64,000 nucleotides of DNA from Histomonas meleagridis 2922-C6/04-290x (GCA_020184695.1 JAANOX010000159.1:1-64000); one strand, 5' to 3'. Positions 43,886 through 48,135 are shown, numbered from the stretch's first letter. The notes: generated from the letters alone by a model not told the origin. Numbers and translations are program-made.

Positions 43886-44455
43886 TTATAACTGTTCATA
43901 AAGAAGTGGTATAATCGCATCAGGATCGCATGGCCTGCCGTAGTTTTTTTTATGACCGACAAAGTATTCATACATAATGTTACGAAGTTTCATTGGATAT
44001 TTAAGTTCTGGTCTCATTAATCTTTTTATCATTGGTTGAGATTCATATATTTTTTTCAATTCATTACAATCATTCATAAAGTGCTCATGGTTGTATTCGT
44101 CAATTGCTTTGGAAAAGAAGCAAAGTGCAAGTGTAAGATATGAAACTTTAAAATCAGATCCATATGGACACCTCTGTGGATGCTGTGAAATAAATGTTAC
44201 GGCTTTATCTATTTCATCAATTGGAATTAGTTCATTTTTGAAAACAGTAAAAAGAAGCTTGAAATGCCAGAAGTTAAGGTTACTTCCAGAGAGAACTTGA
44301 CTGCAAAGTATCGAGGCAAGATTTTTCCCATTAGGGCCTGAGAATTCTGGGATTGCTGATTCAATTATTGGATCAAAATTATTTTTAGAGAGAGGAAGCT
44401 TTTGGAGAAGGCTTTGAATGAACTCATCTGGTGTTTGATTATTTGAAGTGTTCAT
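43886..44455 (-). CDS. Helical hypothetical protein
   Basis: Open frame from ATG 44455; no family recognised. Confidence 0.65.
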   Translation of the reverse strand: MNTSNNQTPDEFIQSLLQKLPLSKNNFDPIIESAIPEFSGPNGKNLASILCSQVLSGSNLNFWHFKLLFTVFKNELIPIDEIDKAVTFISQHPQRCPYGSDFKVSYLTLALCFFSKAIDEYNHEHFMNDCNELKKIYESQPMIKRLMRPELKYPMKLRNIMYEYFVGHKKNYGRPCDPDAIIPLLYEQL

Positions 44456-44608
44456 GTTGAAAAGCAATAATATATTAAAAATGTGATTAAAATTTTCTGA
44501 CAAGTTTTCAATTAACCGTAGTAATGACGGTTTATCTCAAAGTTTCTATCGTTTCTTGATTTCTTTTAAAGATATTTTTCACAGCATCAAGAAATAAAAA
44601 TAATGAAA

Positions 44609-45055
44609 TTAAGTAGCTTTTTTATTGTTGTTGTTCTCCTCTTCGGGATCTTTAAATTCCCATAAATATATGCTTTTGGCAAGATTCGAATAATTATCAC
44701 CAGCTCTTCTAAACACACCTTTCTTTACGAGAGCAAAATGTCCTGTTGCATCACTAAATCCGCAGTCTTCAAAATAAACTATTCCTCTTGTAGTTTTTGT
44801 AATAGCAAGAATTTTCTTTGGTGCAGAAATTTTCTGTGTTAAATAAGCTTTCATTGTAGCACAACGAATGATATATCGCTTTCCATTTTTATCTTTAAAA
44901 TCACTTGTTTGAGTAATCGTGTGTCCTCCAGACATAAGTGCATGTGAAAGTCGTACACAACAAAAGTTTGTTAATGATGTAAGGTTTCCTCCAAGTGTTG
45001 TACCTGGATTATCATCATCGTAAATAGTATCAGCCCACATCTTGTCAAAATCCAT
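44609..45055 (-). CDS. Tae4-like (type VI secretion amidase effector 4 family) peptidoglycan amidase
   Basis: NFCCVRLSHAL (NxCAxRxS motif), GKRYIIR, GIVYFEDCGFSDATGHFAL; catalytic Cys and His present. Confidence 0.85.
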   Translation of the reverse strand: MDFDKMWADTIYDDDNPGTTLGGNLTSLTNFCCVRLSHALMSGGHTITQTSDFKDKNGKRYIIRCATMKAYLTQKISAPKKILAITKTTRGIVYFEDCGFSDATGHFALVKKGVFRRAGDNYSNLAKSIYLWEFKDPEEENNNNKKAT

Positions 45056-45383
45056 CTTGTTCGAAAATGAAATGATGTGATTTTTTGCCATGTTAAGAAA
45101 AAGTTTTGTTTTAATTTTTGCCTACACTTTTTTGAAGGGAGAAATTCCATAAGTAATTTATCATATGACAATTAGGTATTATTCATTTATTCGCCATTTG
45201 TCAGAGACAAGAGTATTAATATAAAATAATACCAAAATCTATTTCGAGAAAGTTTATCATAACATTATTTTTTTATCAAAATAATTTTTTATGTAAAAGA
45301 AAATAAAGACTTCAGTAGAAAAAACTCATTCCCTCAACCTGTTGTTTTTTGAGGAAAAAATGCAGGTGTAAAACACTTTTCAT

Positions 45384-45921: not shown

Positions 45922-48135
45922 ATGCTTTCACTGATCTTTTTTCCCTACCTTATGATGTCTTTTAACCCAAGTTATCAGAAAACACTTACTTTAGCAAATG
46001 AAGATTTTTTGGAAATTTCGAGTATGAAATATGCAATGTTATCTGAAAGAAAACCTCGAGAACTTTTCATCACAGATGATGTTATTTCTATTCCGTTTAG
46101 TTTTTTTAAATATTGGGATTCATTAGAAACAGTACATATTAGTAAATCTGTCAAACGCATCGAAAGTATGTCATTTAGTTCTTGCAGTAAAATAGAATCC
46201 ATTACTTTTGACAACGATTCTCAATTAGAATCAATTGAAAATTCAGCTTTTGAGAGTTGCCAATGTTTAACTCAAATCATATTGCCTCAATCTCTTATTT
46301 CGATTGGCTCTTATTCATTTCGTTTTTGTATTACATTGCAAAACGTCACAATTCCTGATTCTGTTCTATCTATTGGGAAAGAAGCATTTTCTAATTGTTA
46401 TCAACTAAAATTTGTTAATTTTGGTTCAAACGTACAAACTATTGCTGATTCACCATTTGAATCATGTAACGCATTATTAAATATTTCTGTTCCACAAGAA
46501 AATCAAAAATTTACAAATTGTAATAATGATGGAATTCTATATGATAAAAACATAACAGAAATCATATGTTATCCAATTGGAAAAGAAAACGAAATAATCA
46601 CAATACCAAATAGTGTAATATCAATTGGAATTTCATCATTTCATGGAAGTAAAAGAATTAAATCAGTTCAACTTAACGAAAATGTTTTAACAATTAAAGA
46701 CTCAGCTTTTGCTTATTGTATCCAATTGGAAAATATTACAATTCCGAATTCTCTTGTTTCAATTGGAAGTGATTCATTTTATTTTTGCAACAAGTTAATT
46801 ATAACAAATTTAGGAGAAAACTTAGAAAGAATTGGAGAAAATGCATTTTATAATTGCCAAAATCTAAAAAATATTACAATTCCTAATTCATGTTATTTCT
46901 TGGGTAAAAATTGTTTTGAGAAATGTTTAAATCTGAAATTCATTAATCTGAATAAAAATATTGAAAAAATTTTCTGTGATAAAAATGGTATAATTGAGAA
47001 AAATGCATTTTTTTCTTGTGGTATAATAAATATTGAAATTCCAAATTCAATAACAACAATTGATGAAAATGCTTTTAATTATTGTGGTTTAAAAGAGATT
47101 ATATTTCCCGATTCTGTTATATCAATAGGTAAATATGCTTTTTATGATTGTGTTGATTTAGAAAATGTATTTTTTGGTAAAAGTTTTAAAAATTTTGAGA
47201 TTTCTTCATTCTTTGCTTGCTCGAAATTAACACATATTTCTGTATCAAATGAAAATCCTTATTTTAAAGATATAAATGGAATTCTCTTTGATAAAAATTG
47301 CGTAAATTTAATATATTTCCCACAAAACTTAAATAAAACAATGTACCGAATACCAAATCCAACTATTTCGATTGGAAACTTTTCATTTCATTCACAAACA
47401 CGTTTAAATTATATTGAAATCCCGAATTTTGTTATGTATATTGGAAATAATGCATTTTCTAAATGTATAAACTTAGAATCGATAAAACTTAGTGAAAACA
47501 TTAAAGCAATTGAGGAATCGACATTTGATTACTGTATAAAATTACGAAATATTTCAATTCCTAATTCAGTGATTGAAATAAAAAAATATGCTTTTTCAGG
47601 ATGTAAAAATTTGGAAAAAATTGTTCTGAGTGAAAATCTTCAAATAATTTATGAAAATGCATTTAACCCCGTTAATGATATCATCGATTTCATTATGATA
47701 TCGAATACGAAACTTACGAAAATAATATTTCCGAATTCATTAGTTTCACTTGGAAAATATTCGTTTTGTCATTACGATAATTTGGAAACAATAATTTTCG
47801 GTAATAATCTCCAAGTGATTAATGATTTTGCATTTTATTTTTGTTTGAAAGTTGAAAATATTTCTTTTCCAATTTCATTGAGTTCGATCGGTGATAGTTC
47901 CTTTTACATGTGTAATAACTTAAAATATGTTAAATTTGAGAAGAATTTAATAAAAATCGGTCGCGATGCGTTTTACAACTGTAATAATTTGATGCATATT
48001 CATTTTAATGGGTATCAAGAACCAACAATTGGCGCTAATGCATTTGGTAATGTTCCTGCAAAATATGTGATAACAAATGAAAATTATAAAAATGAAACAT
48101 TTGCTGGATTTAATGTAACAAAAAATAAAATATGA
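45922..48135 (+). CDS. BspA-like LRR_5 protein, intact, no C-terminal TM segment
   Basis: More than 20 TpLRR repeats (IPNSVxSIGxxAFxxCxxL), two FxDxNGILF motifs, hydrophobic N-terminus. Confidence 0.92.
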   Translation: MLSLIFFPYLMMSFNPSYQKTLTLANEDFLEISSMKYAMLSERKPRELFITDDVISIPFSFFKYWDSLETVHISKSVKRIESMSFSSCSKIESITFDNDSQLESIENSAFESCQCLTQIILPQSLISIGSYSFRFCITLQNVTIPDSVLSIGKEAFSNCYQLKFVNFGSNVQTIADSPFESCNALLNISVPQENQKFTNCNNDGILYDKNITEIICYPIGKENEIITIPNSVISIGISSFHGSKRIKSVQLNENVLTIKDSAFAYCIQLENITIPNSLVSIGSDSFYFCNKLIITNLGENLERIGENAFYNCQNLKNITIPNSCYFLGKNCFEKCLNLKFINLNKNIEKIFCDKNGIIEKNAFFSCGIINIEIPNSITTIDENAFNYCGLKEIIFPDSVISIGKYAFYDCVDLENVFFGKSFKNFEISSFFACSKLTHISVSNENPYFKDINGILFDKNCVNLIYFPQNLNKTMYRIPNPTISIGNFSFHSQTRLNYIEIPNFVMYIGNNAFSKCINLESIKLSENIKAIEESTFDYCIKLRNISIPNSVIEIKKYAFSGCKNLEKIVLSENLQIIYENAFNPVNDIIDFIMISNTKLTKIIFPNSLVSLGKYSFCHYDNLETIIFGNNLQVINDFAFYFCLKVENISFPISLSSIGDSSFYMCNNLKYVKFEKNLIKIGRDAFYNCNNLMHIHFNGYQEPTIGANAFGNVPAKYVITNENYKNETFAGFNVTKNKI

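Follow-up and report, generated by a model that had tools for sequence, protein, structure and literature searches.

A window of 64,000 nucleotides from the Histomonas meleagridis 2922-C6/04-290x genome (GCA_020184695.1 JAANOX010000159.1:1-64000; positions are counted from its first letter) carries an intronless ORF of about 148 codons on its minus strand, which a sequence-only reading had placed at 44609-45055 with the motifs NFCCVRLS and GIVYFEDCGFSDATGH. We found both the ORF and the motifs, with GHFAL coming after them, and this segment is likely the true coding region of a gene of the Tae4 amidase family (Table 1). An in-frame ATG further upstream would lengthen the product to 160 residues, and residues are numbered here on that longer form. 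We prefer the second ATG, at 45055, because the 12 codons between the two are conserved in none of the aligned homologues, are poorly modelled (residues 1-10 have a pLDDT of 53 in the AlphaFold2 model, and the rest at least 90) and contain two overlapping, putative initiator-like motifs, read from the sequence, 9-20 nt upstream of ATG 45055. The Trichomonas promoter initiator consensus is TCA+1Y(T/A). In an alignment of 40 sequences, homologues begin at the position equivalent to FDKMW of the Histomonas protein, and the contigs of probable RNA runs end at 45014-45035, short of the extension. The extension is probably 5′ UTR or promoter rather than coding sequence.

Table 1. Features of the Tae4-family locus in the window, and NlpC/P60 loci in other parts of the Histomonas genome (contig:positions)
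Feature	Position	Strand	Remarks
Tae4-family (Dae4-like) amidase CDS, likely	44609..45055	-	148 aa + stop, from second in-frame ATG
ORF from first ATG	44609-45091	-	160 aa; 148-aa form begins at its Met13
Possible 12-codon N-terminal extension	45056..45091	-	ATG 45091-45089
Two overlapping trichomonad initiator-like motifs	45064..45075	-	TCATT 45075-45071; TCATTTT 45070-45064
Codon, catalytic Cys44 (N-F-C-C-V-R)	44960..44962	-	Nearly invariant column; aligns with Salmonella Tae4 Cys44
Codon, catalytic His118 (A-T-G-H)	44738..44740	-	Nearly invariant column; aligns with Salmonella Tae4 His126
Codon, Ala120 (His+2)	44732..44734	-	Asp here in 29/40 aligned family members
Codon, Asp132 (G-D-N-Y), candidate third triad member	44696..44698	-	Aligns with Salmonella Tae4 Asp137
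Transcribed body of gene	44604..45035	-	Contigs of three probable RNA-seq runs
NlpC/P60 (PF00877) locus	C126:393605-393868
NlpC/P60 (PF00877) locus	C153:202488-202748
NlpC/P60 (PF00877) locus	C70:276296-276562
NlpC/P60 (PF00877) locus	C111:17987-18259
NlpC/P60 (PF00877) locus	C35:118495-118737
NlpC/P60 (PF00877) locus	C35:44545-44778

The protein belongs to the Tae4 family

The sequence-only reading took the product for a Tae4-like amidase and proposed the Pfam Tae4 profile as a check. The protein matches that profile (PF14113) over positions 2-125 of 125, scoring 60.2 bits where the cut-off is 27 (E 2.7e-16), and a whole-genome scan with PF14113 gave the same score for this locus and no second Tae4-family locus in the Histomonas genome. 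An NCBIfam search of the protein returned no match and is uninformative for family assignment. Searched directly against solved structures, the protein found Salmonella and Enterobacter Tae4 at E-values of 1e-4 to 5e-3; when a profile of 40 homologues was used instead, the same structures were found at an E-value of about 1e-36.

The predicted fold agrees with this assignment. The alignment-based AlphaFold2 model has a mean pLDDT of 92.6 and a pTM of 0.86, and is poor only in its first ten residues. In a Foldseek search of the PDB, its best matches were the Tae4 entries 4hff, 4j30 and 4jur (TM 0.69-0.72, E about 6e-8, lowest 5.9e-8), followed by Agrobacterium Tae4 and Serratia Ssp1, and the top 11 matches were all Tae4/Ssp1 chains. 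Among the 40 homologues, 13 positions are at least 90% conserved; the Histomonas protein keeps all 13, including Cys44 and His118. Collectively, these data show that it is a Tae4-family protein of papain-like (NlpC/P60) fold, a predicted cysteine amidase encoded in a protist chromosome.

The catalytic residues and the aspartate at His+2

Cys44 and His118 stand in nearly invariant family columns, as expected from the sequence-only reading, which had taken the catalytic Cys and His to be retained. It had also remarked on an Ala two residues after the His, where Asp was remembered. That observation is accurate, as position 120 is Ala and Asp is the majority residue in the alignment, but it does not mark a lost catalytic residue. 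Salmonella Tae4 reads GHVTLW...SDQC, with Thr at His+2; its triad is Cys44-His126-Asp137, in which the Asp lies 11 residues past the His, and the D137A substitution abolishes toxicity (PMC3695027). Because an active Salmonella enzyme has Thr at His+2 and uses Asp137 further on, Ala at this position is not a defect.

The wider family follows the same pattern. Eleven aligned sequences lack Asp at His+2. Ten of these have one within the four positions that precede a conserved Tyr, and the eleventh, which has neither Asp, also lacks the Cys and the His. Where Asp is present at His+2, a second, pre-Tyr Asp occurs in just 5 of 29 sequences. Across the 40 homologues the counts are thus 24 with the first alone, 5 with both, 10 with the second alone and 1 with neither (Fisher p 3e-5, uncorrected for phylogeny). 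The two aspartates are nearly mutually exclusive, and the swap is seen in several separate branches.

Asp132 of the Histomonas protein falls within this loop in the alignment, two positions ahead of the conserved Tyr, and the triad is plausibly intact as Cys44-His118-Asp132. Judged from the alignment, the Tae4 family appears to put its His-orienting residue at either of two positions, which would explain the apparently missing Asp. The family Trp at His+4 is replaced by Val in Histomonas, and there is a short insertion in the strand after the catalytic His; with this strand remodelled, the substrate or activity could differ.

A single, integrated and probably transcribed gene

The gene sits within a 341.8-kb contig, and its neighbours within 11 kb are a BspA-type leucine-rich repeat (LRR) gene, UFD1, a phospholipase B gene and a Sec1-family gene, in keeping with the eukaryotic surroundings described in the sequence-only reading. 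Its GC3 of 0.208 falls within the range of the neighbouring ORFs (0.16-0.35), at an overall GC of 34%. One DNA-run contig covers 42100-45323 with zero differences, spanning the gene and two upstream genes at a depth of about 498, equal to that of the flanking contigs, and the stretch is present in DNA runs from two samples. Contig, neighbours, GC3, depth and the two samples agree that a tae4 homologue is stably integrated in a eukaryotic nuclear genome.

The sequence-only reading had seen no obvious immunity gene, and a Pfam scan of the neighbouring ORFs likewise gave no Tai4-family match, these ORFs either having no Pfam match at all or being eukaryotic genes. Neither the adjacent immunity gene nor the type VI secretion context of a T6SS effector-immunity pair was found, and the host is a eukaryote. 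Since there is no Tai4 neighbour and the host is eukaryotic, we do not file the gene as a T6SS effector. The ORF directly downstream (43886-44503, minus strand) has no Pfam match, and nothing about it suggests an immunity protein; contigs from each of the three probable RNA runs cover it, with X4 giving a much higher contig depth, 170. The BspA-type gene (45922-48135, plus strand) has six LRR_5 blocks, and several joints that skip about 280-1020 bases occur in its repeats, in DNA and probable RNA contigs alike; these most likely reflect assembly across repeats, not splicing.

Three runs that are probably RNA gave contigs over the gene (X3, 44604-45014; X4, 44604-45024; X5, 44617-45035). This evidence consists of assembled contigs at a depth of 5-10, without strand or ends, and the RNA label of the three runs was guessed by a tool. 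None of them has any depth over the intergenic segment 45055-45448, which the DNA run covers fully, and neighbouring ORFs show equally gene-limited coverage in them. This pattern favours reading the three runs as RNA and the Tae4-family gene as transcribed. The gene is probably transcribed; expression in the recipient is seen in three probable RNA runs, unstranded and with a guessed label.

Relatives and history of the gene

A single-sequence word-index search retrieved nothing beyond the query and a single metagenomic relative; the family became visible in HMMER and profile searches. An exhaustive HMMER search gave 85 matches, and a profile search gave 238, of which the best 120 were listed. 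The named clusters among the best matches were Tritrichomonas foetus TRFO_21668, Monosiga brevicollis, the ciliate Furgasonia, Branchiostoma and Nematostella, and the profile search added sea anemones and hemichordates among the matches listed. Eukaryotic or eukaryote-like matches are 45-58% identical to the Histomonas protein. Named bacteria are 26-35% identical (Nannocystales and Paraliomyxa 33-35%, Prevotella histicola about 26-28%, and an RHS fusion). Close metagenomic matches lie on contigs of eukaryotic appearance. The nearest match is 56% identical, a divergence at which synonymous sites are saturated, and lies on a 2.7-kb AT-rich contig with no other credible gene; others have a fragment of VPS9, a trefoil-GH31 gene or split diacylglycerol-kinase domains beside them.

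The phylogeny with bacterial homologues that the sequence-only reading had called for separates the named eukaryotes, Histomonas included, from the sampled bacteria. In a 55-row maximum-likelihood tree, 21 bacterial-type rows are split from 34 rows that hold all named eukaryotes with support of 95/87, in a tree that is unrooted, with limited bacterial sampling and many metagenomic rows of uncertain origin. The Histomonas protein thus groups with eukaryotic Dae4, apart from bacterial Tae4. Within the eukaryotic side, a 22-row protist clade holds Histomonas, T. foetus, Monosiga, the ciliate and others (98/89), and the animals form one clade (97/91). In a 71-row tree, one match in the same half as the Histomonas protein has a bacterial type II secretion neighbourhood.

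Closer to the tips, the 71-row tree places Histomonas, T. foetus and three metagenomic rows in one clade (76/96). In the 55-row tree this parabasalid grouping is neither recovered nor rejected: forcing it gives an AU p of 0.23, and forcing Histomonas and T. foetus alone gives 0.20. The trees are compatible with parabasalid monophyly and support it weakly. A rare feature common to these genes supports their descent from one ancestor: past the catalytic His, VKKGVFRRAGDNY in Histomonas and IKNGVFRVASDNY in T. foetus replace the family LWNG, and seven parabasalid-type sequences have lost the family Trp at His+4. In a comparison of the Histomonas and T. foetus loci, the Tae4 gene was the sole match as far as the T. 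foetus contig reaches, which is about 1 kb past the gene. The 147-residue ORF that immediately precedes the T. foetus gene is not a paralogue.

The best reading is of an old Dae4-type acquisition, ultimately bacterial, rather than a recent transfer into Histomonas, and the gene is most likely the orthologue of T. foetus TRFO_21668, inherited vertically in tritrichomonad/dientamoebid parabasalids. The lateral transfer proposed in the sequence-only reading holds for the ultimate bacterial origin; the data do not favour a direct, lineage-specific transfer, as the closest relatives are eukaryotic and named bacteria reach about 33-35%. Overall, we hold with good confidence that this is a single-copy, intact and apparently transcribed Dae4-type gene of host-like composition and old bacterial ancestry, likely orthologous to TRFO_21668. 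All eukaryotic Dae4 genes may also go back to one ancient transfer, then spread or inherited across very distant eukaryotes.

Several relatives have features of their own. The five parabasalid-type metagenomic sequences (L002, JGI 3300042596; L004, JGI 3300042615; P0148; L003, SRR27710286; P0150) lie on AT-rich or gene-poor contigs, one of them beside a VPS9 fragment; they probably come from parabasalids that are uncultured, and could be of use in dating the acquisition. P0020 and P0141 are two gene calls for one Tae4 homologue on the same 8613-base ENA contig: P0141 has about 18 extra residues between the A-T-G and G-H of the His motif, and P0020 loses the Cys and His columns. A short intron left unspliced may account for the difference; if so, the contig would be eukaryotic. 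A Branchiostoma floridae homologue (P0151, UniRef C3ZPF...) is annotated as C-type lectin domain-containing and has many amphioxus paralogues, which suggests an expanded, lectin-fused Dae4 family in amphioxus.

Signal peptide, site of action and likely role

As the sequence-only reading had noted, no signal peptide is apparent. Neither the 148- nor the 160-residue form has a signal peptide, a transmembrane segment or a hydrophobic N-terminus, and the highest Kyte-Doolittle mean over nine residues in the first 58 is 1.21, at residue 40. Chou and colleagues reportedly described dae genes as having acquired a eukaryotic secretion signal; the Histomonas protein has gained none. T. foetus, Monosiga and most close metagenomic relatives also lack a signal peptide, the exception being P0138, with a hydrophobic start, and the Branchiostoma homologue begins with a hydrophobic leader. 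Bacterial Tae4 has no signal peptide either, being exported by another route, and for this reason its absence is a poor guide to the substrate. Classical signals are also said to be missing from many secreted proteins of trichomonads.

Mechanistically, Cys44 would serve as the nucleophile and His118 as the general base, with Asp132 orienting the His. By homology, the enzyme would cut the gamma-D-glutamyl-mDAP bond of peptidoglycan stem peptides, which is the specificity of Salmonella Tae4 as summarised in PMC7641422. It might break down or kill ingested or nearby bacteria, alongside the products of six NlpC/P60 loci, and could be delivered by a non-classical route to phagosomes or to the outside, or act in the cytosol on wall fragments. 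Histomonas eats bacteria. Its culture also depends on E. coli (PMC8529796), and with bacterivory and this dependence taken together, digesting or antagonising bacteria would be the likeliest role. On this analysis, we lean towards an antibacterial or digestive wall-hydrolase function. Delivery is the weak side of this reading, since nvDae4 is secreted and the Histomonas enzyme has no signal peptide.

The six NlpC/P60 (PF00877) loci in other parts of the genome all score above the Pfam cut-off and are free of internal stops; the NlpC/P60 wall hydrolases that T. vaginalis acquired laterally may be their counterparts. A GH25 scan of the Histomonas genome gave no match. A GH19 scan gave none either, but it also found none in the control and is uninformative; GH19 has been reported in H. 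meleagridis by a published paper.

Alternative explanations

Histomonas cultures contain E. coli, and the authors of the genome had to filter out bacterial contigs (PMC8529796), so bacterial contamination or a chimeric assembly join, which the sequence-only reading had itself raised, might have produced the locus. Both are countered by the length of the contig, with eukaryotic genes on both sides, by a neighbour-like composition (GC 34%, GC3 21%), by probable RNA contigs that agree with the gene boundaries, by control genomes of the E. coli K-12 type, which have no PF14113 match, and by the single DNA-run contig that links the gene to both upstream genes at the depth of its flanks. Contig continuity, equal depth, host-like GC3 and the neighbours effectively exclude an artefact, whose probability we take to be negligible. 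A second alternative is a genuine but recent transfer from a gut bacterium, leaving a lineage-specific gene still near its bacterial donor. In its favour, the family arose in bacteria and is widely found among those of the gut, Prevotella histicola for one; a recent gain of Tae4 is reported for Giardia muris (PMC7641422); and the Histomonas gene is intronless and has no eukaryotic signal peptide. We nonetheless think it very improbable, given that named bacterial matches stay within 33-35% or below where eukaryotic or eukaryote-like matches reach 45-58%, that the tree splits named bacteria from eukaryotes, that T. foetus has a homologue with a common derived motif, and that GC3 is fully host-like.

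An old Dae4-type gene could still have changed its function. The product might no longer be an antibacterial wall hydrolase, acting instead in the cytosol on muropeptides or other gamma-glutamyl or isopeptide bonds, or it might be catalytically weakened. The lack of a signal peptide, which Histomonas has in common with T. foetus, Monosiga and the closest metagenomic relatives, would fit such a change, as would the loss of the Trp at His+4 and the altered strand after the His in parabasalid-type sequences; the UniProt name of the T. foetus protein, "Cytoplasmic protein", points the same way but is a transferred label, not evidence. However, the Cys, the His, a candidate Asp and all nearly invariant positions are kept over deep divergence, which fits amidase chemistry, bacterial Tae4 likewise has no signal peptide, and many secreted trichomonad proteins are said to lack classical signals. 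We therefore consider a repurposed protein unlikely. A further, tentative reading of low probability is that the proteins of parabasalid type, from Histomonas, T. foetus and five metagenomic relatives, form a distinct signal-less Dae4 subtype with a remodelled catalytic strand, perhaps working inside the cell or by a non-classical route, or that all eukaryotic Dae4 stems from a single ancient transfer. The traits at issue are the lost Trp at His+4 and the short insertion, with the loop Asp in place of the His+2 Asp in several members. If such a subtype exists, it would be another solution than the secreted immune effector of animals, and it might act on muropeptides from digested bacteria or reach phagosomes non-classically.

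Significance and comparison with known systems

H. meleagridis is the agent of blackhead disease of turkeys and chickens and lives among caecal bacteria. A conserved, apparently transcribed predicted amidase and six NlpC/P60 loci are thus candidates for the parasite's digestion of, or competition with, bacteria. The gene adds no category of its own: the passage of tae genes into eukaryotes, the activity of animal Dae4, the Tae4 of Giardia muris and the wall hydrolases of Trichomonas are already known. What is new is that tritrichomonad/dientamoebid parabasalids join the known spread of Dae4-type genes, the twist being a possible signal-less protist subtype with a remodelled strand past the catalytic His. 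Among the papers searched, none links Tae4 with Histomonas. Of those listed that name this amidase family together with Tritrichomonas, Monosiga or Dientamoeba, the Nematostella Dae4 paper alone was relevant, and the report of the Histomonas genome is silent on amidases, peptidoglycan and lateral transfer (PMC8529796).

The background on which the sequence-only reading drew is published, both for domesticated tae genes in eukaryotes (Chou et al., 2015, as cited in PMC8713801; nvDae4, PMC8713801) and for the laterally acquired NlpC/P60 peptidoglycan hydrolases of T. vaginalis (bioRxiv 10.1101/320382; PMC12612818). The T. vaginalis enzymes embody the same broad idea, in that a parabasalid uses a papain-fold DL-endopeptidase of bacterial origin against bacteria, but they belong to PF00877, whereas the Histomonas protein belongs to the Tae4 family, PF14113. 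They also reportedly carry signal peptides and SH3b domains. Tae4 goes unmentioned in both reports (bioRxiv 10.1101/320382; PMC12612818), and T. vaginalis is marked as lacking Tae4 in a comparative table of the G. muris study (PMC7641422). Giardia muris itself resembles Histomonas as an intestinal protist with a Tae4-family gene. That gene is described as a recent, G. muris-specific acquisition with a proposed action on the gut microbiota (PMC7641422); it is absent from the named entries in the best 120 of 238 profile-search matches, and is probably a separate transfer.

Bacterial Tae4, as known from Salmonella Typhimurium (STM0277) and Enterobacter cloacae (PDB 4j30, 4hff, 4hfk), belongs to the same Pfam family, matches the predicted Histomonas fold at a TM of about 0.7 and has its catalytic Cys and His in the same motifs, N-x-C-x-x-R and A-x-G-H. 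Salmonella Tae4 is also like the Histomonas protein in having no Asp at His+2 and an Asp further along the chain. The Histomonas gene differs in being nuclear, without a T6SS or an adjacent Tai4, and its product is about 22% identical to the bacterial enzymes. Compared with Salmonella Tae4, it lacks the Cys135/Cys139 pair flanking the Asp, has three residues inserted before that Asp, and has Val for Trp at His+4.

The eukaryotic proteins are closer. Domesticated amidase effector 4 (Dae4) was named by Chou et al. (2015, Nature 518:98, as cited in PMC8713801). The Nematostella vectensis protein, nvDae4, cleaves Gram-negative and Gram-positive peptidoglycan, kills B. subtilis and is inactive as the Cys mutant C63A; it has a secretion signal, is secreted, and is induced by immune stimuli (PMC8713801). 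Like eukaryotic Dae4, the Histomonas protein is a Tae4 homologue encoded and, on the evidence above, probably expressed in a eukaryote, with the catalytic Cys retained, and it lies on the eukaryotic side of the tree with cnidarian, hemichordate, amphioxus, choanoflagellate and ciliate proteins. Unlike nvDae4, to which it is about 30% identical, it has no signal peptide and falls in the protist, not the animal, subclade.

The nearest named homologue is T. foetus TRFO_21668 (OHT09433.1, 148 aa, annotated as hypothetical), at about 45-48% identity (45% over 141 residues). The two proteins differ at His+2, where T. foetus has Cys, not Ala, and in the D-C-G before A-T-G-H, which T. foetus lacks. 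Tree support for their orthology is modest. They are of the same length, have no signal peptide, carry the motif K-x-G-V-F-R-x-A-x-D-N-Y past the catalytic His, and are both encoded among eukaryotic genes.
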